Position numbers and translations under genes: made by a program. Shown piece after piece: positions 11,461 through 57,402 of a DNA stretch of 64,000 bases. The number at the start of each line of letters is the position of its first letter. The first letter of the stretch is position 1. The DNA is taken from positions 184,195 to 248,194 of the forward strand of contig CAJFCJ010000004.1 in the NCBI GenBank assembly GCA_904063045.1, read 5' to 3'. Under the pieces are notes generated by a model. That model was given only the letters and a program-made list of their open reading frames with translations. It did no database searches and was not told where the DNA came from. Source of the DNA: Dimorphilus gyrociliatus (lineage: Eukaryota; Animalia; Annelida).

Positions 11461-12819
11461 TCAAGCTACTTCATCACCGTTGATAGTCGTTATGCCAGCC
11501 AAACTATCAGACGAACTGTGTAAAGAAGGAGTTTTACTTTTCACTACTTTCTCTTCAGGTTCATTCGAAAGTTCAATCATATTAGATAGTTTGTATTTTG
11601 CCAATATGGGCAGAGTACTAGGAGGCACAGGAATTTTCTGTCTAGAAGAACTATTTTCCGAACAAAGGGCTTTACTATCTTCTTTCCTAGAGCTATCTTC
11701 CTCAAATAACGGATTCAAATCATCATCAAAATGAAAACTCTGAGACATTAATGTCAACTTGGGTTTTTCTTCCGAAATTTCCTTCTCTTTTTCCACAATT
11801 TGAGAGTATCTCCGATCCCCCGTGGAATAAACTTTACCCAGCTCTTTCACACTGCTTCGAAATTTATCTAGTTCTCGTTTCTCATCAAAAACAATGCTTG
11901 TTTGTCTAGTTTTCATCTTGTTAGCAATATTCGCTTGAACGCTTTTAACTTCAACTATTGCATCTTTGGCACGAGAAAAATCCGCATTTTTTATTAAATT
12001 TTCATGATACTCCTTCAACGAAATAAGACATGTCTTGGCCAAATTAATTTCTTCCAATTCCGAATTGATCTTGTTCGATTTTTCGGTGTATAAACTGACA
12101 ACCATCTGTTTTAAAATGGTCGCTCTTTTTGTTAGAAAATGGACATGTTGCTCAAATACGGAATCAATTTTTATTAGAGCCTCATCTTTTTCATCAGAAA
12201 ATTTTTGTCTCTCGGCTTCAAGATCTCTTTGCTTTGATAAAATAGAATTCGTTGCCCGGTCAGTTGTCGTATCTAACGTTGTTTTTAATTCAGCTACAGC
12301 CCCTAAATATTTTATGAATTTACATATAAAATATATTACTATACACTTATGTTTAAAAGCAATTTTTGTATTACCTGCTATAGGAGCCCTCTTCTTTTCA
12401 TGTCTTTCTTTGCAGTATAGCATATCCTCTAGGCACTCGTCGCATACAGCCTGGGCGCAAGATGAACAATACTGTAGCAATTCTTTCTTATGTTCTTTGC
12501 AAAGAAAACTCTGGGGCGATTCTACAAAACTAGAACCGTAGACTAGTTGCTGTATATATTTAATGTAGAAATTTGGCTGTAGAGCTGTAATTCCTGCGCA
12601 TGGCAGGACAGTAAAACTTCTGCATGACGGACATTCAATCTCGTCGGTATTTGCATGTTTCGAATACTCCGTCAAACACATTTTGCAGAAAGTGTGATGA
12701 CAATTTAGAAAGAGAGGTCTATGCTCATGTTGATCAAATAGATTCCGGCATATTAAGCACATTAATATATGCTCATAGTTTTCTTCTCGCACCGGCGTTC
12801 TTCGACTTAGTGAGTTCAT
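11461..12819 (-). CDS. TRIM-like RING / B-box / coiled-coil protein with a Ser-rich tail
   Basis: RING CLIC...C.HTFC..C...CPSC, then B-box C.EH.....YC..C...VC..C.....H, then a coiled coil. One 72-nt GT-AG intron lies at 12303-12374. The first ATG is at 12819; an upstream exon is possible. Confidence 0.8.
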   Translation of the reverse strand: MNSLSRRTPVREENYEHILMCLICRNLFDQHEHRPLFLNCHHTFCKMCLTEYSKHANTDEIECPSCRSFTVLPCAGITALQPNFYIKYIQQLVYGSSFVESPQSFLCKEHKKELLQYCSSCAQAVCDECLEDMLYCKERHEKKRAPIAGNTKIAFKHKCIVIYFICKFIKYLGAVAELKTTLDTTTDRATNSILSKQRDLEAERQKFSDEKDEALIKIDSVFEQHVHFLTKRATILKQMVVSLYTEKSNKINSELEEINLAKTCLISLKEYHENLIKNADFSRAKDAIVEVKSVQANIANKMKTRQTSIVFDEKRELDKFRSSVKELGKVYSTGDRRYSQIVEKEKEISEEKPKLTLMSQSFHFDDDLNPLFEEDSSRKEDSKALCSENSSSRQKIPVPPSTLPILAKYKLSNMIELSNEPEEKVVKSKTPSLHSSSDSLAGITTINGDEVA

Positions 12820-14858
12820 AGTTTCTTCTCTTATCAATTACTTTTACTAAAATATCCAAGTTTTAGTCGAAAAAGTCAATGGTGCATCAAAAAATAGCCA
12901 ACAGTTTGACAGGCTGTCAATTATAGACATTTCTGCATGCTTAATCACTGTAATATGATGGTTTTCACGAAACCCGATACAAATCCATTTGTTTGTCGGC
13001 CATTTTGAAAAATGATGGTACCGTACTATTTTGCAATGCTCGTCGCAAAGTAAGCTAACCAATTGATTCGAGTAATTCTTTCTTGACCAAAAAGGGAAAG
13101 AGAGTAATTGATATTTACAAGGTCAAGGTTAGCAAGTTATATTACTCATGATCTCACATAGCGGAAGTTCCAGAAAGTAGTATAAAAAATTCACAAAAAA
13201 GAAGGAAAATAAATGGAAAATAAAGTTTTCAGCTATTAAAATGTCTATTTGTAACGTTTCTGTTTAGTTTTTAAGAAAAGAATTAGAGAAATATTTTATA
13301 CGAATATAAGTCCAGTAAACCCATATTAAGATGCAAAGGTGATAAAACACCAGGGTATTACTATATAATTAGACTATATATTGTATTGGGCAGGGCAAAG
13401 CCATTTTTAGATAATTTTTTAAATTAATTGGTTCTTTTTTTGTTATTTATAGAATGCAGGCGGTTTGTACATTCATCCTAATAATTTGTTTTCTTTTTGT
13501 ATTAAAAATCCAATATTTATTATTAAAAGTAGGTTAAATGCATTATTATTTTTTTCTTATAGATGTAAGACTTTACTTATAAATTTGTTTTACTCTGAAA
13601 TGGAATTAAAAATCAGTTAAAGTAATTAAGAATTTTACAAAGAATTCTGTATTTTGATTTTAATAGAATTTTCCCTTTACTTTAATCAATCAATCTCAAA
13701 CTAATAGTTATAAAAACAATTTAGCCTATCCTCCATCCAACCAAGAAGATAATTTGATTAGAGCAAGAAGGGAATTGATTACTAATGACTTGGAAGAGAA
13801 AAGAAAATAATGTGAAATTTAATACTTAGAAAACGATAAAATGTAAATAACACCGAAGAAAAAAGTCACAAGAATAGTAGATAAAATGATTTTTTTTAAT
13901 AACCACGTGATAATTTATTGTGGATCATTTGACGAAGAGATAATCCGATTTTTTTAATCGATCGTAGTGGGAAAATATATTATTATAGACACATATTTTA
14001 GCAATTTACGAAACAAAAGTAAAAAATTGTCAATAAACTAATCGTCTAAACATGAAAAAGCTCTCACAATAAGAGAATTTAAAGACAAAATCACTAAAAA
14101 GTTTTACTTTCACCCTTTGCCCTTAAGGTACGCATGAAAAGAGAAATTTTAAAGAAACTTTAAGATCGATATGTTATCAGCATAATGTCAATCAAAGAAC
14201 TGTAATTTTTCTGAAGCGGAGAATAAAAGAGGTAAAAAGAATAGAAACAAAAAGAAATGCTGGCATCAATCAAATCAATTTGTTAATTAACGACGAATTT
14301 GAAATTGTCTATCGATTTATTTTCAAAGGAATCTAAATTGTATAGTCTGAATAGTCTAGAAGGGCTAGTCGACTATTCCATTTATACTAAAGAAAGAATC
14401 ACCTAATTTAAAAAATGGTTTAAGGCAAACGTGGAAGATATTATCCAGCAGTGGTCAGGGTATTGTTACCCAACTTTGGCAGCTTTGTTTATCCTTGTTG
14501 TGATAAATTATGGGGTTGAAAACAGATTTCTTTGTACACGGGGATCATATTTCAGATTTAAATTGTAGAGGAAAATTGATAACGAGGAAGATTAGATTTG
14601 AATGAGAAACAGTCCTATATAATATCCCGAACACGTCTTCTATTTCATTTAACAATCATTTGATAAAACCTGTCATGAATTCAATTTCATATGGCTCTCA
14701 TTATGTTTCAATCTTATTAAATTTCATATGTTTAAATGAAGATTTCGTCATCATTAATCTTTAAATATATTTATTTTAATTGCAAGTATAATTTCATCGG
14801 AAGAGAAAAAACACTACTTACGGAAGAGTGAAATTTTGATGTAATCCTATATAAAACA

Positions 14859-17800
14859 ATGAACAGGAATGCAGTCAATTCACCATCGCTAAAAGATTAT
14901 CATGATCTACGCTCAAGAGCTGAATTAGAAAGATCTCCTGCTGAACATGAATTGATTAGTGAAAATTATGAACGAGGTTATTATATAAAATATTTTCTGC
15001 AGCTATAAGTTTATATTGCTATCATCTAGAAACTAGTGTAAGTAGCCCTATGGGACTGAATGAATTAAGTACAAAGTATATGGAGATTTTAAAGCAAAGA
15101 GAAAAAGAAAGAGAGATATTTCGAAATCTTCAGATTAGGTTACGTACACGTGAGGGACAATTTCGAATTCTTCGCCATGCTATGGGAGATGCTACGATAA
15201 CTAAGATATTAACAACAGTCAATTTACCGAATATCTGTTTAGGGCGAAGGCTTAATGAAAGTAACTTGGAAGAAAGATTTATGGATGCTGAAGATAAAAT
15301 TCGTCAAATGCAGATCGACTATTCAGGAACTCTACATAAACTAGAAGAACTAAGTGCTAATAAACATGATCTATTAGATGAAATAGATAAACTGGAGGAA
15401 AATATAATAGACTCTCAAAAAAGTTTACTTAGTGTTCAAAAAGACAACAAATATTATAATAATATGGTAAAAAGCATTCAAAAAGGCAACCAGAAGACTG
15501 TAATTAACATAAATATTCGTTGTTATATTAATAATCTAGATTAATTAAAAATTCTTTACAATATAGGATAAAGAGATTAAGAATGATCTTATTCAAATTG
15601 TTGAAATTCAATTAGCTCAAAAACAAACACTGATTGGAAAGATTGCAAGTATGAATAAGAAACACAAAGAATATGAAAGAATAATCCGATCTATGAACAA
15701 AGAGGTAGAATTGAAAGATTGTAACCAACTGTATTGAATAGTTAAATGCTTTTTTATAACAAAATATTAATTAATTATAGTTAAAAACTGGCCATGACCC
15801 TGTTCAAAATCTACTTTTAAAGAATAAAACTTTAAAATTGGATAATGCTGCCTTAAAAGCTACCTCTTCTGAATTAAGAGTGCTTTTATATCATCAATAT
15901 AGTAAAACAGAAAGTAAATCTAATTCAAGTGAATCATTTAAAGAAAGAGATCAATTACTTCAAATTATAAAAGGTTTGAAAGAACAAGTAAATCTTAGAG
16001 AAGTAAGCATTAAATCAAATTATTTATTAATTACTAAATAACTATCGATGATTTTTTCTAAACCTTTTTAAGAAATATGAGAATTCAGAAAGACAAAAGT
16101 TAGTTACTTACCAAATGAGAATATCTAATTTAATCTCTGAAAAGAAAAGGATAGAAGTTCAATGCCAAGAATTGAAAGATAATTTACAATCTCTTATAGA
16201 AAAAGTATATTTTACTCTATTAGAACTTTTTTTTTTGTAAAAAGAAACTTTCTTCAATTAACTTGTTCGTTACATAGCCAATCAATAATCCTGATGATCG
16301 TGAGAAACTCTTGGAAAGGAAAATCTACAAATTGACCCAAGAGCTAATGGAACAAAAATTACAGAATGAAAAATTGCAAGATGAATTAAGCAGTTTTCAA
16401 TCATCCGACTCTTCTGATGATTGTAATTCTGAGAATAGTACAAAGAACGAAATTAAGCGTTTACATTTAACTATTGACAACCTGAAGGAAAGGTATTAAA
16501 ACAATAATTTAGAAAATATCCTTTTACACCAAATTAATTAAAAAATTTCCATTCTCTCATTAGAAACTTTGACCTTGAAAAACTCAATAAACAGGCAGAA
16601 CTGAGAATAAATTCTCTAAGAGCAGATATAGCCTCTCTAACTGAACAGAGTTCCAAGATAAATACGGATGATATGCAATATAAACTCATTCAAATCGAAT
16701 CTGAGAAGGAGAAACTGTCTTGTGAAAAAAATTTATTAGAGGAGAAAGCCAATCAATTAGAAAACGAAGTGAAATTTATAAAAGAACTTCAGTTAGAGCT
16801 TGAAAAAGAAAAGAAATTAAGACAAACTGTAGAAGATCAATTATCAACTCTGAAGGAGAGTGAAAAAAATGAGGAAAATAAAAGGAATAGAAAAGATATA
16901 GAGAATGAGCTTGAAGAAGTTACTAAAGACAGAAATATGCTTAATGATAAAATGTTAGAATTATCAGATACTTTGCAAAAACTGAGAACAACTCAAGAGG
17001 ATATGACAAAAAGAAAGAATTGTTTAAATGATCATATAAATCTATCACAGGGGTTCACCGATGAGAGAGTGAGATATACTAAAAAAATTGAGACTTTGGA
17101 AAATAAATTAAAAAGTGCCGAAAAAAAATTAACTTTAGAAGAGCAAAGGTCAAATAAAGCTAAACTTACTGAGCTCTCTTTGGAAAAGGAAATTAGGATA
17201 TTAAGTAGGCAGAATGAAAAAATCAAACAAGAGAATATAGTTCTGAAAGAGAGTAATCAAAGTCTACAAGCGGTTAGAGAAGATATTCAACATCTCGAAA
17301 ACAAGGGAAAGGACTTAGAGAGATCTGCAATGGATATAAAGAACAAGCATAAAGATGTTCATAAACAATATAAACATTTAAACGATGAAATGCAAAAAGA
17401 TATTACCGATTTGCACAATTGCGTTTATCACGCTGCACTAGAAATGAAAGAATTTATGTCAAATGGTGGTAATTTCGATGATAAGGAAATAAAAGAGATC
17501 GTTAAAGATTTGACAGAGGAAAAAAAAACACAGGTTCAAGTTATTAACAAGTTGCATGACAAAATAAAGAGTTTGGACGAGGATATTAGACGCTATGAAA
17601 CGGAGATTGCTAACTCTAATAAGGTAAATCAAAATTTAGAGAATTGGAACAATGAACTCAAGAATGAGGTAGAGAAGATATCTAAAAAACTCGAAGAAGA
17701 ATTATCAGAAAGGGACAAAGTTGAAGGCGAGTTGGATAACGTTAAAAAAAATCTGTCAATTTCCATTGAAAATTCTCATACTCTAGAAAATAGGATAGCC

Positions 17801-19583
17801 TTATTAGAGCAAAATGGTCAAAATAAAGATAAACAATTAGACGTTCTTGAGAAAGAATTAGAAATGATATATCAAGAATTAGATCATTTTAAAACTAAAG
17901 TTGCTGAAAATGGAATAGAATTAAAGAAAAAAGAAGAAATAAATATTGAATTAATAAAAACTTTAGAGGAAATTAAAAGTGAAAATGAATGTTTGAAAAA
18001 CGAAAGTCTTACTGCTTATAATAGTAAAACTAATTTAGACGAGACTCTGTATAGAAGTCAGCAAGAATTGGAAGAATTAACAAACGTAAACTTTGAGCTT
18101 AAACTTAAACTAAAACAGAATGAAACGAATGAATTAAAATTAATTGAAAAGCTTAAAGAATTAGAAACGAAAATTAATTCAATTAATAAGGTAAAACTAT
18201 TTATTATCATTCATATTATTTTCATTGAAATAGAGGATTGTTAACAATTATTGTTATCCTTATTATCTCTTTCCCATTCTAGAAATATGATGCAGAAATT
18301 AACAAAAAATTTGAAGAGCAACAAGAATTAAATTCATCTCTGCTGAATGTTCAACAGGAATTGCAAAATAAAATATCTGAATATGAGTAAGATACCTTTC
18401 TTTAACTAACAATTAAAGATAAAAACGTTTCTTTTTAATCAGTAAATTATATAAACAACTCGAATTAGAGAGGCAATTTAAATGTCAACTTGAAAATGAT
18501 AAAAGAAAACTGGATTTATTAATACAAGATTTAATTAAGGAAAAAGGACTTTTAAAGAGTACGATAGAAGATTTGAAAAAACAAAATTTAATTGAAGAAA
18601 ATGATAATAGTCAGACAGTTTCAACTCATGAAATTACAAGGAAATTAAGTTATTTAGTACAAGTATAGTATTATTAATAAAAGATAAATACACCAAATAA
18701 AGTGATTCTCATTCCTTTGTCTAGGTAAATTGTCAAATATGCCAAACTCATATTGATAGTAATGATAAGGTAAATATAATAGACATTATACTTTGCATTT
18801 ATTTTACTAAGTAATCATTTGTTTATGCAATGTTAAAAATCTCCAGTTGACATGCGCTATATGCTGTAGAGAACTTTGTTCAGAATGCTGCAGTCAAAGT
18901 GAAATATCAACAACCAAGTAATACATTGATTCCCTTCTCTTCATATCAACTTAACAATTCTACTATATTTAGTATAACATCTAGATTTTGCGATGAATGT
19001 TACTCATTGAGACGAAAGGATGCCGATAATATAAATCAAAATTCATCTAAAATCACTTGCGCTTCAAATAAGGCATCGTAAGTAATAATATAAGTAGACA
19101 TAAATATCATGAAGAGCTGACATTATCTATGTATCTTTTAGAGATCACATTATCTACCCATCTCGAATGGTTGACAAAAAATTGCATATGGAGGGACTTT
19201 CTCTTGGTAGATACGAAGAACATGTTGTACCTATTTATATTGATAAAATAGGTACAAAATTAATCTGGAAATTTCACTCAAATCCAAAAGATATACAATT
19301 ATCCTTAGAATTTTATAGAAATATAAAAGAATTTGATAAAGAGAATATTACTCAACAAGTTATAGAACCAACAGTTTACGGTTGTTCAAAAAAAATCTTT
19401 ACAGGAAAGTTAAATGTTCATAAAGCTGGATTTTATGTTTTCAAATTCAATAATATTATAAATGAAGACATCCAGTAAGTTGATTTTTAATGCTCGCAAA
19501 AAATGAACTTATAGTATTATTTAAAAACAAACAGCCAGATAGAGAATTATTTATCCTACGAATTATTGATTGATGAAAAGTGA
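14859..19583 (+). CDS. FYCO1: Long coiled-coil protein with a FYVE-like Zn finger and a C-terminal GOLD domain (FYCO1-like); spliced
   Basis: About 900 aa of heptad-rich exons (15030-18660) precede an 8-Cys finger spliced as CQIC...CAIC....CSEC...CDEC. A GOLD-like segment follows (LIWKFHSNPKDIQLSLEF...GKLNVHKAGFYVFKFNN). No RUN domain was seen, and both ends are approximate. Confidence 0.6.
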
Positions 19584-23819: not shown

Positions 23820-25034
23820 CGGCTATTTATTTATACGATACTCTCAATTCTGCAACAACAAAAAGAATTCCTTAATCAGAATTCTTTTAGAGTAAAAAGA
23901 TATTCTCAATCAACCTTTTTTTGTAGATAAGAAAGCGACACGCCTTCTTTGCTTTAATATAACTTCGGCAAAGCTATAGTTTTATATACGCTATTTATAA
24001 TAAAAAAAAAAAATATTTATATATATATATATATAATATATCTAATTACGTCCATAAATATTTCTCTGTCTGTGACAGTCTCTTCCGTGTGCTTTAAAGA
24101 GTATCTAAGACAATAGATCTGGCCACTATATGTGTTTTATTATTATAAATGTCTTTGATAATTTTATGGCTTATTCAAAGGAATGTGAAATATTTTTTGC
24201 AATTGATTCAAGTATAAAATATTCGCCGACTTAATGCTAGTCATAGTTGGACATGATATAAAGATTTTTGTTCCCTCTTATTGCATAATATATGCTATAT
24301 TTTTTGCCTTAATATTTAAATAAAAAGCATTCTTTCATAACTGCATAAAAAGAATTGTAATATATATTTTGAGGTATCTTTTTTAGCTATAAAATCTTAT
24401 TTTCAGGTTTCACATTTATAACTTTTAGAGCAAAGACTACAATACTATTTAATAAAGTTTTATATACTTTATTAGCATACATTAACCAGCAGACTCAACA
24501 AACGATAAAAATTAAAGTTATTAGAATATAGATGGCGTAGTCTTCTAAGTAAATGTTCTTTAATTGGCCACAGGACATATTTTGTTTTGACAAAATATTA
24601 CGTTTAAACAAAAGAAAAGGACCTGATTCTATGAAAAAATTAATAATGATATACTTTTAATATCAATAGTCATTTATTAGTATTTCATTAGTACCATTTC
24701 TAACTTAATTAAAAAAATATACCTTTTTTTGTTGATATTCCATGAAATATTCAATAGATTCTAAATAGAAACGAAAAAATACATTTAACTATATCCAGCG
24801 AACTTTTGAGCGGTAAAGTGCTAAAACTTTTTCCAAAGTATGAATATCTTTGAGGAGATTATAGAAAAAATCAAAAAACTAAGTCACTGTTGTTAGGAAC
24901 TAAGTCTGTTTTTTAGGTCTTTTTTAACCTAGCTTTTTGTCAATAAATCTATAACTGATTTTCTACGAGTAGGTCCAAAACATTTCGCTGAGTTGCCGTG
25001 TACGAAAATAGATATTGCGTAAAGGTAGCTAGAA

Positions 25035-25206: not shown

Positions 25207-25327
25207 AACAGTTCTAACAGAACACAGCTTAAAAAGGAAAAAAAAGCTAAAGACAGCTTGATAACTAATAAAAGAAAACTTTTATTCCTTATTCCTAAAT
25301 ACTTTACAAAACTCTAATTCAAAAATT

Positions 25328-26947
25328 ATGTCGAAATCTGATGATTGTGGCTCTCCTTCTGCATCTGCAGTAGATGGCCCTAGTGGTGCCGCAGCAGCGG
25401 GAATTATGCCTATGGATGTAGTTATTTCCTTTGATACTACTGGATCCATGTCTAGTTACTTGGCTGAAGTCAGGGCCAAAATGTCAGAAATCATTGAACG
25501 TCTATTCACTGACCTCCCAACTTTGAGAATCGGTGTCATCGCCCATGGTGACTACTGTGACAAAAGAACTTACATCACCAAGCATCACGAACTATCGAAT
25601 AATGTAGCTGATTTAGTGGATTTCGTCAACAAAGTTGGAACTACTGGTGGTGGTGATTGGGAAGAGTGCTATGAATTAGTCCTCCACGAAGCCAGAACAA
25701 AAGTTAATTGGGTTAAAGGGGAAGCCGACAGAGCTTTGATTATGATCGGAGACGCAATTCCCCATGAGCCAAATTATAGCTTGAACACAAAGAAACTAAA
25801 TTGGCGTAAAGAAACATTAAGTTTGTACGAGGACTTGGGCGTTAAGATTTATGGTATTCAATGTGGTACAAACCCCAAAGCAAAGCCATTTTATGAGAAA
25901 ATTGCAAAGGCTACAGGTGGAAAGCATTTAGATTTGAACAACTTGGGCTCAATTGTTGACATGTTGATGGCTATTTGCTATAGAGAAAGAGGAGCTGAAA
26001 TGTATGATGCTTTCGAACTTGAAGTTCGTGAAAGGGAAGGTGCCGCTCTTAAAGCTGATTTAGACAAAATGTTCAAAGATCTTCGTGATGATGATGTTGA
26101 AGCGGATGCTGCTGTAATGGGAGATGTAACCAGTGATGGAACTCCTACAAAGCCATCCATGTTTAGAAAGGCTTCTTCGTCAAAATTGGCAAAAACTGAT
26201 TGCTTAAAAAAGGTCAAACCAAAATCAGTAAGAAGAACTGTAAGAAAAGCTGGAGCTGCAAAAGTTGGTGCAGCTAAACCATCTGCTGCTAAACTTAGAT
26301 CAAAAAGGAAGTTAATTTTTGAATCGGATAGCCATTCCGATTCTGATTCTGAATCTAAATCAGAATCTGAAGATGAAGTAGTCGTCAAGAAAGCTAAGAA
26401 ATCTGATGATAAAAAAGCTGATAAGAAAGTTAAGAAATCCGAGGCTAAAAAAGACAAAAATGTTCGTCTAAATCGAGAGGATTTGAAAACAGATAAATTC
26501 TCAACAGAAGACGGACTAGCTTTTGGAAATTGGCGATTAGCTATGGCACCAAAACGAAGTGTTAAAAAATTTGCAAAGTACAGTTGGTCCCTTATTGGAA
26601 AAACGACTTTGGCTCGAAACCAACTTTGGACAAATTGCAAAGCCAGGGCTCTCTATGAAATTGCTATCCAACTTCCAAATAAGAGAAAGATGGGAGTTGC
26701 TTGTCTATGCTCCAAATGGACAAACCCAAAACTTTGGAAGAATAACTTGATAAAGAAAACAAGTGGATTTAATGAAAAAATAGCTGATGCAGTTCAAAAA
26801 GGCTACAAAATATTTATCAGGAGGGCACCTCTTCCTCTAACGACAAAATCGTTAAGATCTTCATCCAAAAGCGGACCTCAAATAATAGATGAATTGAATG
26901 GCAGATTTGATTACGCCTGGCACAAACCAACAAGAGATATCTATTAA
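25328..26947 (+). CDS. Intronless 539-aa protein: vWA domain, basic/acidic low-complexity linker, and a C-terminal ET-like (GIY-YIG-like) domain
   Basis: Uninterrupted ORF. vWA MIDAS-type motifs: DVVISFDTTGSM, GGGDWEECYE and LIMIGDAIPH. The C-terminal motifs are ALYEIAI, QKGYKIFIRRAPL and RFDYAWHK. AATAAA lies at about 27047. Confidence 0.85.
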   Translation: MSKSDDCGSPSASAVDGPSGAAAAGIMPMDVVISFDTTGSMSSYLAEVRAKMSEIIERLFTDLPTLRIGVIAHGDYCDKRTYITKHHELSNNVADLVDFVNKVGTTGGGDWEECYELVLHEARTKVNWVKGEADRALIMIGDAIPHEPNYSLNTKKLNWRKETLSLYEDLGVKIYGIQCGTNPKAKPFYEKIAKATGGKHLDLNNLGSIVDMLMAICYRERGAEMYDAFELEVREREGAALKADLDKMFKDLRDDDVEADAAVMGDVTSDGTPTKPSMFRKASSSKLAKTDCLKKVKPKSVRRTVRKAGAAKVGAAKPSAAKLRSKRKLIFESDSHSDSDSESKSESEDEVVVKKAKKSDDKKADKKVKKSEAKKDKNVRLNREDLKTDKFSTEDGLAFGNWRLAMAPKRSVKKFAKYSWSLIGKTTLARNQLWTNCKARALYEIAIQLPNKRKMGVACLCSKWTNPKLWKNNLIKKTSGFNEKIADAVQKGYKIFIRRAPLPLTTKSLRSSSKSGPQIIDELNGRFDYAWHKPTRDIY

Positions 26948-28087
26948 CTACAAACTAACTCAAAAGTCATATTTGTACAGTAAATATTTAAATTAAAAAG
27001 TTTGTCATGTGTGATATGTACTAGTGTATAGATAGTAGATTATTTCAATAAATATCGCTTAAAACAAAAAACAATAACTTGTCTTATTGACTAGAAAGTG
27101 AAAAAATTGTATAAATACCATTGAAAGTGTAGTAATGATATATTGAATTTATCCGATGATATTTGGAAGTTAACTAACTAAATGTAGATTATTTCTACTA
27201 GTAAAGTTGAACATTGATTTGTTTTATACAGTAAATCTTGTTTAATCATTTTAAAAGTGGGTAAAGGGGGGTTAATATGAACAGGTGTGCATTAATTAAA
27301 TGAAATTCCAACAAAATTATTCAATAAACTACAAGTCATTAATCCTTAATTAATACTTTACAGTATTGTAACAATTTATTGTTTATAGAAAGGTCATTCA
27401 GCTTTAATTACCAGTTTTCAATGTGAACTATATAGTCTTTTTTATATCTAAGCTATGAAAAAGTTTTCAGTTCTTTTAATAGTTTAGATAGTTAATTAAT
27501 TAATTAATTTGGAATAACTCGAACTGTGCTTTAAACTATTTTATTACGTTTGTAAACAATATTTCTTATAGATCAACTTTTCGTCAGATGAATTGCAATA
27601 ATTAAAGTAAGGGATAAAGAAAATTAGCTGAACTAAACGAAATCTGTATCACATAGTATGAAAATGGGTATTCAATTTTGTAAAGAAGGTGGATGAAGAG
27701 TGAAAGAATTATACTTTAAATAACCTTTGGTACATAGATATTTTTTTGGTAATAGTAGCGTACTATCTCTAAATGTTACTTTTAGTAAACCAAAATCGAA
27801 TACATTTATCGCGCAAATTTTGGAATCGATTTGATACGATTTCTGCTTTCGATTTACAGTCATCGTCAGATTCCGCTTCCGATAGTTGGTGATAGTCCAG
27901 TTAGTTTTTGCCAAATATCAAGGTTTGTTTTATGACTCAGTTCGCAAAAATTGTTTGAGACTTTCCGGAAATAACGTGGATATATTGCTATACGTTTATA
28001 TTAATTGCCATTGCATTTTACAATTTTATTAGTATCTTTTTATTTTCATTGGAGCAGACAAGTGATAGAATTACGTAATTGTTGAAG

Positions 28088-55237: not shown

Positions 55238-57402
55238 TCAGAAATCCAGCTCTTCATCATAAAAATACGTGTCACTTATCTCGCTATCTCCGCAAGAACC
55301 CGGAGTTGCCGTTGGAGTTTGTGATGCAAATCCTGATGAAAAGAACATGTTAGCAAGAGATTCATCATAAGCTGTCTTTTCTGAGAGTGTTTTGATGATA
55401 TCCTTCTCCAAGTAACCCGATGTTATAACACTAATTGCATCCGTCGGAACTGCTTTACACATTTCTGGTTGATTATTATTCAAAAAACACAGACTGGTTG
55501 CGTGGACGGTCCATGTTTGTAAAACATAGATTTTTCCATCTAAAACTTGTAACTTTGTCATTTCGTGTCCCGGTGTCATTTCTATATCACCCAAATGTTC
55601 CTCAGTCAATCTCCAACTACTAGTATTTACATCGAATTTTAATATTTCCTCATTAGGACATCCAACGCATATGTCATCATTATCTGTCCAAAGGAGATAA
55701 GATTTTTGAAGAAATTCATCACAGGAAACTGCCGGTGGATCATATTCTATAAATGTTCGCGAATCCATATCAAACGAGAAAAACGATATAGGGGAATCGG
55801 AAACCTCGCATCTTGACCAAAGGAAAACTTGTTTGTCTTTAAATGTTACAGCTCTTGCGGCACTAATGCGTAATCTTCGGGGGAAATTATATAGCAATAT
55901 TCGCCGTCGTAACAATGTTGTATCGCATAAAGCTAGACAATCTTGTTCGCAAGTCGATAGTGTCGTTATTACATAGCCTCGGCAAGTAACGACGGCAGGT
56001 CTCAAGTCAGAAGGATGAACGAATACTTTCGTTAATTCTCTGGAGTAAGCCGGACCGATTCTGAAAAACGAATAACATAGGATAATTAAATATAAAAATA
56101 ATAGACCGATAAATAATACATTTCTTACTTATAAAGCATGATGTCCGCTCTAGAAGAAGCAATATCAATAATTAATATATCGAAGGAGTCTAAGAGCATA
56201 GGATAAGGCTGAGCAGTTGGCAATAACAGGCAGTAAAGTTTATTTTTTTGTAGACATAAACTAGCAATACCAACATTATCGGGTATAAGCTTTGATATGT
56301 CCGTTTGTATCTTTAATTCCAGCCATTTATGGTTAGTAACGTCATAAAATAGAAAGAGTACCTGCTTATAGAAAACATTCTGAGCTAAGATTGGTAGGAC
56401 AGGGAGCAATTGCTTATAGGTACACTTCTTCTGACATGATATACAAAGCTTGTCTCCAGGAAAACTTCTTGGTCGTTTTACTGGAAGAGCAGGTGAGAAA
56501 GTTCTCTGCAGCATTAACGAATTAGGCCTTATAGGTCGCTTTTTAGGAATATTGCAGTTAGTGGAATTATTGAGATAAAGTGTAATTTTTTCATTAACAT
56601 TATTAAGTTTTGAAAAGACTAAACTATTTTTCAGCAGTTTTATATCAGCAATTGTCCAAGATTGTAGATTTAAGCATTCCAGAAGAGAATTTAGACTATC
56701 TGAATCAACTCTTGTAGATGCAAAATTCGCCCAGTTTATCACGCACTGAGCAGCATTCGATGTATTTACGAACTTCATTAGTGTTTTATCGCTTAGCAAC
56801 ATTTGAAAATAGTTAATTGGTAATTCAAGAATGTGTTCGCTAAAGATGAAATAATCAGCAAATCTGCATTCTACTATTTTCCTGGTTGTTTTATATAATT
56901 TTAAAAATTGGTATCGATCTGCCATGATACAAAGATACAAACAATTACTTAAAGAAATATTTCCATGGTTTAAAAAATAGCAGGTTATAAAGTCCTTTAA
57001 CTCTTCTAAGAGGAAAAAATCTGACAGTCTCATTAAATCTTCTACATTGGCAGGATAAATCACTATTCTTGAAGTGTAAAAATAATCCAAAACTTCTTCG
57101 AACGATTCGATAGAGTTGAGATTTAACGAATCGGATAGATTGATTTCATTGTCACGATGTTCCCTCCAACCTAGTTTATCATCATCAGTAAACATGGAGC
57201 GAAAATACAAGCATGAACTAGCTAAAATTGCTCGATGAGCAGGAAAGGCAGTTCCATTTACTAAAATTTTAACATCGCAAAATTCTCCTCGTCTCCTTTG
57301 GGATAATAGTTCACTAACTAATACACTATGATCCGCGCGAACAAACGAACATTTGCTTTTCTTGAATGCGTTATTCATAATTGATGTGCCATCAACTGCC
57401 AT
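55238..57402 (-). CDS. BTB-BACK protein with a degenerate kelch-like C-terminus (KLHL/KBTBD-like); one intron (about 56062-56128)
   Basis: BTB FCDVKILVNGTAFPAHRAILASSCLYFRSMF...DYFYT and BACK-like ISLSNCL...ADRY. The C-terminal region is beta-rich with Trp-spaced segments but has no clean GG kelch repeats. Confidence 0.8.

Follow-up and report, generated by a model that had tools for sequence, protein, structure and literature searches.

A single-copy annelid gene joining a prokaryote/phage-type vWA domain to a predicted GIY-YIG domain of the plant ET type

We analysed a stretch of 64,000 nucleotides from the annelid Dimorphilus gyrociliatus (assembly GCA_904063045.1, contig CAJFCJ010000004.1, positions 184,195 to 248,194 of the forward strand), hereafter the window, in whose numbering all coordinates are given. 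The open reading frame (ORF) at 25328..26947 on the plus strand is a functional, expressed, single-copy, single-exon host gene. Its product combines an N-terminal vWA domain of the prokaryote/phage type with a C-terminal domain for which profile links and predicted structure support the GIY-YIG fold of plant EFFECTOR OF TRANSCRIPTION (ET; PF19239) proteins. The gene is under purifying selection, is chimeric in ancestry and belongs to an old, widespread and uncharacterised spiralian family found in molluscs, annelids, brachiopods and nemerteans. With slightly better than even confidence, we read the product as a nuclear, nucleic acid-bound adaptor with a non-catalytic GIY-YIG domain, encoded by a host gene of chimeric, prokaryote- or phage-derived origin.

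The gene, its transcript and its product

The ORF starts with ATG, is intact and encodes 539 amino acids (aa) plus a stop codon. Assembly of public reads from run X4 produced a collinear contig of 1,764 nt, at a depth of about 1,180, that matches window positions 25254-27017 with 0 differences and contains no joint. Run X4 is RNA-derived, because its contigs from the adjacent downstream gene skip three GT..AG introns of 58–62 nt. The transcript is divided as follows.

25254..27017, plus strand: unspliced mRNA, minimum extent, from the collinear X4 contig
25254..25327, plus strand: 5' untranslated region (UTR), with an in-frame TAA at 25262-25264 and no upstream ATG
25328..26947, plus strand: coding sequence by translation, 539 aa plus stop; single copy in the genome assembly
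26948..27017, plus strand: 3' UTR, with ATTAAA at 26992-26997, about 20 nt ahead of the end of the mRNA contig

The gene lies between spliced animal genes on a contig of 2.5 Mb and is the only vWA-GIY-YIG gene in the 77.9-Mb assembly. Its coding stretch has a G+C content of 36–41% and its flanks 22–31%, and we found no inverted or long direct repeats around it, neither terminal inverted repeats nor long terminal repeats. Contigs 90–97% alike to the gene are present in two marine metatranscriptomes. Compared with this related population, pN/pS is about 0.23 over aa 247-503, a count that rests on 37 listed differences (20 synonymous and 17 replacement), with 28 further differences outside it. 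Every replacement among the listed differences falls at a non-conserved position.

The preliminary description of this ORF, made from the sequence, was accurate in its account of the reading frame and of the motifs KLRSKRK, ALYEIAI (aa 441-447), AVQKGYKIFIRRAPL (aa 488-502) and ELNGRFDYAWHK (aa 522-533), as well as of a Lys/Ala tract, an acidic tract and KK repeats, all of which are in the translation. It likewise correctly assigned the N-terminus to a vWA domain with a DxTxS metal ion-dependent adhesion site (MIDAS). The regions of the protein upstream of the C-terminal domain are the following.

25412..26047, plus strand: vWA domain, prokaryote/phage type (aa 29-240), from PF00092, PF25106, the structural model and identity to the phage-contig protein P0103
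25433..25447, plus strand: MIDAS motif D36-T-T38-G-S40, in SFDTTGSM, from alignment columns of animal, phage and bacterial rows
25943..26086, plus strand: helical extension of the vWA domain (aa 206-253; MAICYRE...YE.EVR), from helices in the model
26102..26467, plus strand: low-complexity linker (aa 259-380), from sequence; not alignable across the family
26243..26311, plus strand: Lys/Ala-rich basic tract ending in KLRSKRK, which resembles a nuclear localisation signal (NLS) (aa 306-328), from sequence
26321..26377, plus strand: acidic Ser/Asp/Glu tract (aa 332-350), from sequence
26387..26458, plus strand: KK repeats (aa 354-377), from sequence

In isolated aa 1-251, PF00092 matches with 30.3 bits (cut-off 23.8) and PF25106 with 28.3 bits (cut-off 27). 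The AlphaFold 2 (AF2) model of the vWA domain, built on a 32-sequence alignment, has a mean predicted local distance difference test score (pLDDT) of 91.3, and Foldseek relates it to integrin beta-I domains and TFIIH p44 at E 1e-10 and probability 1.0. Among animal, phage and bacterial rows, D36, T38, S40 and D142 do not vary, and conservation of T106 is at least 90%; as judged from this alignment, the predicted MIDAS (D36, T38, S40, T106, D142) is complete. The helical extension is shared with the prokaryotic and phage proteins up to about aa 236, where the P0103 alignment ends. The acidic tract, among aligned family members, occurs only in the D. gyrociliatus protein and its 66%-identical relative P0002. 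Four further residues, H73, C77, C114 and H146 (HGDYCD ... ECYE ... PH; aa 73-146, 25544-25765), are near-invariant in the animal, phage and bacterial vWA family, and may form a second metal site.

A GIY-YIG fold with altered catalytic positions

The resemblance of the C-terminus to the plant ET domain, which the preliminary description had proposed from motifs, is upheld by profile matches in relatives, by a bridging protein and by structural comparison. Three relatives (P0047, P0053 and P0086) match PF19239 above its cut-off, with 26–27 bits over profile positions 108-161, and 18 of 44 aligned C-terminal domains match it at E up to 0.01, no other family being matched. The profile built from these 44 domains (A2) was searched against 1.84 billion representatives and found 389 proteins, including Mercenaria mercenaria P0122 at E 1.7e-56. 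P0122 in turn matches PF19239 with 155 bits over profile positions 2-158 of 163, and aligns with A2 in hhalign at 98.4% probability over 139 columns. In the source genome, the A2 profile has the present gene as its sole match (1.1e-32). P0122 itself is a 991-aa protein with an unusual tandem-nuclease architecture: a transposase-type helix-turn-helix (HTH) stands ahead of six ET-type GIY-YIG domains in tandem, whose motifs are near-canonical (VYIGKG, VYTGKAK..RL, AEN..YAWN). It is likely an active relative.

The AlphaFold model of aa 375-539 has a pLDDT of 83.5 and a predicted template modelling score (pTM) of 0.82. An exhaustive VIA scan of this model against 48,161 PDB chains placed GIY-YIG enzymes, whose fold is a three-stranded antiparallel sheet with flanking helices, at ranks 1–5 and 7, with unrelated folds at Z 3.9 or lower.

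T4 EndoII: Z 9.4, 119 residues aligned, root mean square deviation (rmsd) 3.4
PD-T4-3: Z 5.3
Hpy188I: Z 4.8
I-TevI: Z 4.4
UvrC-N: Z 4.3
Eco29kI: Z 3.8

T4 EndoII and Hpy188I were also among the best geometric matches in a Foldseek search of the PDB. Once the protein's own family is set aside, its best match in the ESM Atlas is a Streptophyta cluster whose members all (100%) carry PF19239 (TM 0.68 over 140 residues); the Atlas's own model leads to the same result, and the language-model neighbours listed there carry GIY-YIG families (PF01541, PF19239, Eco29kI). As for the check by AlphaFold and Foldseek suggested in the preliminary description, Foldseek alone gave a best E of 0.12 for the AlphaFold model, and the exhaustive scan was favourable.

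The best structural match, T4 EndoII (DenA, PDB 2wsh), aligns over 119 of 134 residues, including an N-terminal extension beyond the minimal GIY-YIG core. It is only 13% identical to the D. gyrociliatus domain, with no sequence-level link: hhalign returned no alignment of A2 with the single T4 EndoII and I-TevI sequences, and neither the whole protein nor the family profiles A1 and A2 gave a useful sequence match among PDB chains. T4 EndoII is a stand-alone protein of about 136–144 aa, a tetramer according to its structure title, whereas the domain described here is fused to a vWA domain.

Plant ET1 and ET2 appear to have the same extended GIY-YIG domain type, in keeping with the roughly 140 residues that align to the Streptophyta cluster. 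The rest of their architecture differs. Plant ET proteins carry Cys/His zinc- and DNA-binding repeats, and the D. gyrociliatus protein has no such repeats and no extra Pfam domain; its GIY-YIG domain is C-terminal, fused to a vWA domain and found in an animal. Since only the GIY-YIG domain is shared, it is not an ET protein. The strand-1 Y-E, the strand-3 Arg and the (F/Y)DYAW(N) signatures are conserved in the spiralian family and in P0122; according to the preliminary description, plant ET sequences would carry them as well. The predicted elements of the domain are listed below.

26468..26932, plus strand: extended GIY-YIG domain, ET/PF19239 type (aa 381-535), from AF2 model, structure scan and profile
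26474..26533, plus strand: N-terminal extension motif R383-E384...F391...F399-G-N-W402, from the family consensus RE..F..WSxW
26648..26671, plus strand: strand beta1 ALYEIAIQ, with Y443 as the GIY tyrosine (model strand 67-74)
26690..26710, plus strand: strand beta2 MGVACLC, with C459 at the YIG-motif position and no Gly, from model and alignment
26807..26833, plus strand: strand beta3 KIFIRRAPL, with R498 and R499, from model and alignment
26906..26926, plus strand: FDYAWHK signature (D528, Y529, W531, H532), the stretch behind the PF19239 matches in relatives

The N-terminal extension motif also precedes each repeat of P0122. Because A2 failed to align with the solved EndoII and I-TevI sequences, we used P0122 as the bridge for mapping catalytic residues, and scored 237 family domains (124 fused to vWA and 113 others). 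The first Tyr (GIY) is present as Y443, and is Tyr in 90% of the vWA-fused and 86% of the other domains. The second (YIG) is replaced by C459, at a position that is Tyr in 54% and Phe in 26% of the vWA-fused family (Tyr or Phe in 80%), and the Gly of this motif is absent here and not conserved in the family. The helix-1 Arg is also missing, with N473 at the best-aligned position; Arg occupies it in 28% of vWA-fused domains, and the alignment is least certain here. The column of the metal-binding Glu holds I520, with D521 and E522 adjacent, and no acid at 517-522 is conserved in the 237 domains. Finally, the C-terminal Asn is replaced by H532, Asn occurring in 13–26% of family domains. A different set of residues is nearly constant: R383 (97%), E384 (91%), W402 (98%), E444 (100%), R498 (100%) and R499 (87%) in vWA-fused domains, and Y529 (98%) and W531 (98–100%) across family domains. 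On this mapping, four of the five canonical catalytic positions appear to be lost in the D. gyrociliatus protein and a family-specific invariant set is kept. The erosion of catalytic positions that had been suspected from the sequence is seen at C459, N473 and H532.

A spiralian family with a prokaryote/phage-type vWA half

A word search found 1,232 relatives of the protein. Those we could name come from bivalves, gastropods and a chiton, the annelids Owenia and Capitella, the brachiopod Lingula and the nemerteans Lineus and Tubulanus, and their source labels read “uncharacterized” or “VWFA domain-containing”. Both domains are conserved throughout the aligned family. Multiple paralogues as well as longer variants occur in many mollusc genomes, and the profile search found the GIY-YIG domain in other architectures too. 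In the literature searched, we found no paper on a vWA-GIY-YIG fusion, in agreement with the earlier remark that no described animal fusion of this kind was known. The preliminary description had named a known, widely conserved and already characterised animal family as a refuting case; the family proved to be widely conserved, but it is uncharacterised.

The Dreissena orthologue is intronless, as is the D. gyrociliatus gene. The Lingula and Lineus orthologues have three introns each, two of which lie at matching positions inside the vWA domain, near residues 171 and 227 of the D. gyrociliatus protein. The Lingula GIY-YIG domain corresponds exactly to a single exon (aa 461-642), which begins at the domain boundary. 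The orthologues of Dreissena, Lineus, Lingula and Owenia lie on chromosome-scale scaffolds beside animal genes. Because Lingula and Lineus have introns, two of them shared, the intronless state is no evidence of recent arrival; in D. gyrociliatus it could be either ancestral or the result of secondary loss. The suggestion that the gene had arrived locally by recent retroposition or transfer is accordingly not sustained, since the family is conserved in four phyla, the molluscs, annelids, brachiopods and nemerteans. Horizontal transfer is supported for the vWA half at the origin of the family, and not for a recent arrival of the whole gene.

The vWA half has relatives of about 360 aa that have no GIY-YIG domain and are encoded on contigs where small genes are closely packed. 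One of these relatives, P0103, is 51% identical over aa 29-236, and its contig carries genes for Acb1, RtcB and an RNA ligase; a second contig carries MazG, thymidylate kinase, dCMP deaminase and a phiTE_072-like gene. Both contexts are phage-like. Identified phage carriers are the following.

Virus Rctr197k: 45% identity
Rhizobium phage RHph_I1_18: 38% identity
595-kb uncultured phage: 36% identity
crAss-like Bacteroides phages: 32–34% identity

In IMG/VR, at least 153 viral contigs carry the gene, mostly of 100–530 kb, in addition to four giant-virus metagenome-assembled genomes, and the vWA domains of the viral contigs are 33–51% identical to that of the D. gyrociliatus protein. Bacteria contribute at least 297 loci at 43–52% identity, in cyanobacteria, myxobacteria, Clostridium, Ktedonobacteria and the candidate phyla radiation (CPR). 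A vWA domain followed by a tail of about 127 aa, about 370 aa in total, is the architecture of all 80 bacterial proteins examined and of most viral ones. In these vWA-tail proteins, for example those of Nostocales, myxobacteria, Clostridium, RHph_I1_18, Virus Rctr197k and crAss-like Bacteroides phages, the motifs SFDTTGSM, AHGDYCD, GGGD..ECYE and IGD..PH are identical to those of the D. gyrociliatus vWA domain; where the bacterial and phage proteins end in the tail, the D. gyrociliatus protein has instead a linker and the GIY-YIG domain. Neither NCBIfam nor PADLOC has a name for the vWA-tail proteins or for the D. gyrociliatus protein. No GIY-YIG domain was found within 3 kb of the gene among the prokaryotic and viral loci examined, and a tblastn search with the GIY-YIG domain against 50,697 phage genomes gave no match.

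The tail is preserved in several spiralian proteins. Lingula P0005 keeps it at the N-terminus (38% identity, E 7e-22), Owenia P0118 has the order tail-vWA-tail, and the paralogue P0090 also contains it; the P0118 gene is spliced and adjoins TRAPPC10 on a 37-Mb scaffold. A hidden Markov model (HMM) of the tail misses the D. gyrociliatus protein, and a search of the source genome with the tail of P0103 gave no match. By contrast with the prokaryotic and phage proteins, the two vWA paralogues in this genome are only 23–24% identical to the D. gyrociliatus protein. In a tree rooted on these paralogues, 25 vWA-GIY-YIG proteins form one clade, with a support of 99 in the Shimodaira–Hasegawa-like approximate likelihood ratio test (SH-aLRT). 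With bacterial rows added, all spiralian forms, including the tail-bearing ones, group together in a single clade (99), separate from the bacterial and phage rows, which intermix. A position of the spiralian vWA domain nested within phage diversity had seemed plausible in the first tree; an approximately unbiased (AU) test did not require it statistically. In this test, the monophyly of viral sequences was not rejected (p 0.64), and bacterial and phage sequences intermix.

The 43–52% identity to bacterial and phage proteins, together with the single spiralian clade (99), suggests one ancient transfer of a vWA-tail gene, after which the GIY-YIG domain replaced the tail. A spiralian ancestor would have acquired the prokaryote/phage gene once, the gene would then have been duplicated, and in one copy the GIY-YIG domain would have taken the place of the tail. 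Intermediates still found in Owenia and Lingula allow this order of events to be reconstructed. Cyanobacteria have 22 loci in which ligA has the vWA-tail gene directly upstream, in the same orientation, and the phage genes sit among genes for nucleotide metabolism and nucleic-acid repair; these neighbourhoods may point, if weakly, to a role in DNA transactions.

Around the D. gyrociliatus gene, the preliminary description had counted about 1.5 kb of gene-free DNA upstream and 1.1 kb downstream. The downstream stretch of about 1.05 kb is indeed without strong transcripts. Upstream, one X4 contig maps at 24047-24364 and another at 24379-24980; the second contains a minus-strand intron of 94 nt (24629-24722), and these transcripts (24047-24980) may represent a divergently transcribed neighbour or a non-coding RNA. 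A depth-3 contig from the RNA library of run X1, on the minus strand, joins 25356-25554 to 27119-27190, leaving out 1,564 nt that have GT..AG ends, and may represent either antisense RNA spliced across nearly the whole gene or an assembly chimera. The preliminary description had called the gene the only intronless one among its neighbours, but it is not the only candidate: the window has other long uninterrupted ORFs, one encoding RING and B-box domains (TRIM-like; 11461-12837, minus strand), one encoding BTB/BACK domains (56125-57402, minus strand) and one of 523 aa with an ATG start and no Pfam match (16673-18244, plus strand).

Function, alternative explanations and significance

The two halves of the protein differ in charge. 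The vWA domain is acidic (isoelectric point, pI, about 5), and the linker and GIY-YIG domain are basic, with net charges of about +14 for aa 241-380 and +20 for aa 381-535 (pI 10.2); GIY-YIG domains of the family have a median pI of 10.3, and 97% are above 9. Because the canonical catalytic positions appear mostly gone and the invariant set R383/E384/W402/E444/R498/Y529/W531 is kept, binding of DNA or another nucleic acid by the basic GIY-YIG domain without canonical cleavage would be the likeliest activity. The vWA MIDAS would use an acidic side chain to bring in a partner protein. The vWA fold serves as an intracellular protein-interaction module in the DNA and RNA machineries of TFIIH p44/Ssl1 and Ku70/80, and TFIIH p44 is among the best structural matches of the present vWA domain (4wfq, rmsd 2.4); the relation to these proteins is one of fold only, and they have no nuclease-fold partner domain in the same chain. 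We infer only from its sequence that KLRSKRK acts as an NLS; together with the other basic clusters of the linker, it would make the protein a nuclear adaptor bound to nucleic acid.

Several points weigh against this adaptor interpretation or its parts. PF19239 (cut-off 21.4 bits) does not match the D. gyrociliatus protein at E up to 1, so that membership of the PF19239 type rests on transitive profile links and predicted structure; a search of the genome with the same profile at E up to 10 also found no match, but no control genome matched either. In the Foldseek search of the C-terminal model against the PDB, no match reached E 0.001. Catalytic residues were mapped by sequence alignment to a single bridging protein, P0122, and the active site may be shifted or non-canonical, with D521 and E522 next to the Glu column. 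The strict conservation of Y443, E444 and R498 may likewise reflect catalysis rather than binding. Nuclear location, DNA binding and partner recruitment are themselves inferred. As for ancestry, non-spiralian eukaryotes were sampled non-exhaustively in the trees, and we name no donor because of the AU result (p 0.64).

The most serious alternative, although on balance an unlikely one, is an active nuclease with a non-canonical site (e.g., Y443, E444, R498 and Y529) that defends the genome against the DNA of viruses or transposons, the vWA domain serving as regulator or sensor. The best structural match is a phage nuclease, T4 EndoII (Z 9.4), Y443, E444 and R498 are conserved at 90–100%, and both halves of the protein have phage or viral affinities; the many mollusc paralogues with varied architectures also form a pattern typical of conflict genes. 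The GIY-YIG domain of plant ET2 has been reported as an active nickase and to replace the nicking domain of UvrC (PMC6585611). The spiralian family, however, does not conserve the YxG, Arg, Glu and Asn positions, and T4 EndoII differs in having the full catalytic set. Neither a helix-1 Arg nor a metal-binding Glu is conserved in the 237 domains, and the D. gyrociliatus protein is without the second Tyr and the Asn. E444 is next to Y443 on the strand, so their side chains should face opposite sides, as strand geometry would predict. The single copy in the source genome also speaks against this alternative. A related and rather doubtful possibility is that the captured vWA-tail gene, once its tail had been exchanged for an EndoII/ET-type GIY-YIG domain, gave rise to a new animal genome-surveillance protein, which would recognise, and perhaps nick with a non-canonical site, foreign, damaged or modified DNA, and whose mollusc paralogues would represent the expansion of a conflict gene.

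It is very improbable that the gene is part of a mobile element or of an endogenous virus and does nothing for the host. Its lack of introns, its viral or prokaryote-like vWA domain, the many mollusc copies and the transposase-type HTH of P0122 would be compatible with such an origin, as would the GIY-YIG domains known in Penelope-like elements and homing endonucleases (PMC1564403). We rejected this explanation on finding a single copy in 78 Mb with no terminal inverted or long direct repeats. The protein, moreover, has no reverse transcriptase, integrase or transposase domain, the family is conserved over four phyla with intron positions shared in two, and the gene is under purifying selection and yields abundant mRNA.

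We regard as even more improbable a chance or modelling artefact, in which the C-terminus would be an unrelated basic domain. The C-terminus of the D. gyrociliatus protein has no Pfam match of its own, Foldseek gave nothing better than E 0.12 and hhalign failed against the single EndoII and I-TevI sequences. Against this stand the PF19239 matches in 18 of 44 relatives with the full-length bridge through P0122, the GIY-YIG enzymes at ranks 1–5 and 7 of the exhaustive scan, and the Atlas feature and structure neighbours, which are overwhelmingly GIY-YIG families in addition to the protein's own. Bacterial or phage contamination of the assembly, to which the 43–52% identity of the vWA half could point, can practically be dismissed, given the position of the gene inside a 2.5-Mb contig between spliced animal genes, the ATTAAA signal about 20 nt before the mRNA contig end, the intron-containing orthologues and those on chromosome-scale scaffolds by animal genes (Dreissena, Lineus, Lingula, Owenia), and the absence of the GIY-YIG half from every prokaryotic or viral locus examined.

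In the GIY-YIG superfamily's reference classification of 2006, the only animal representatives are Slx1, COG3680 and Penelope (PMC1564403), and the spiralian vWA-GIY-YIG family is absent from it. Like this family, SLX1, ANKLE1/LEM-3 (COG3680) and the Penelope endonuclease place a GIY-YIG fold in an animal protein. They belong to other subfamilies, keep their catalytic residues and are combined with a RING domain (SLX1), ankyrin and LEM domains (ANKLE1/LEM-3) or a reverse transcriptase (Penelope), and not with a vWA domain. The family described here adds a fourth type to these three kinds of animal GIY-YIG protein.

ET proteins have been described as plant-specific (PMC6585611), and our results indicate that the GIY-YIG domain of these regulators extends beyond plants. 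If the surveillance function outlined above were true, an ET-type GIY-YIG domain, seen as a plant innovation in methylation control, would have had an independent and ancient career in animals. The vWA-tail protein from which the other half appears to derive is widespread, with at least 297 bacterial loci and at least 153 viral contigs, and nameless in both databases consulted. That the gene is strongly expressed in so compact a genome speaks for a real role in the cells of D. gyrociliatus, and the family is present in many copies in commercially important bivalves. With intermediates in Owenia and Lingula, it offers a clean example of a chimeric animal gene.

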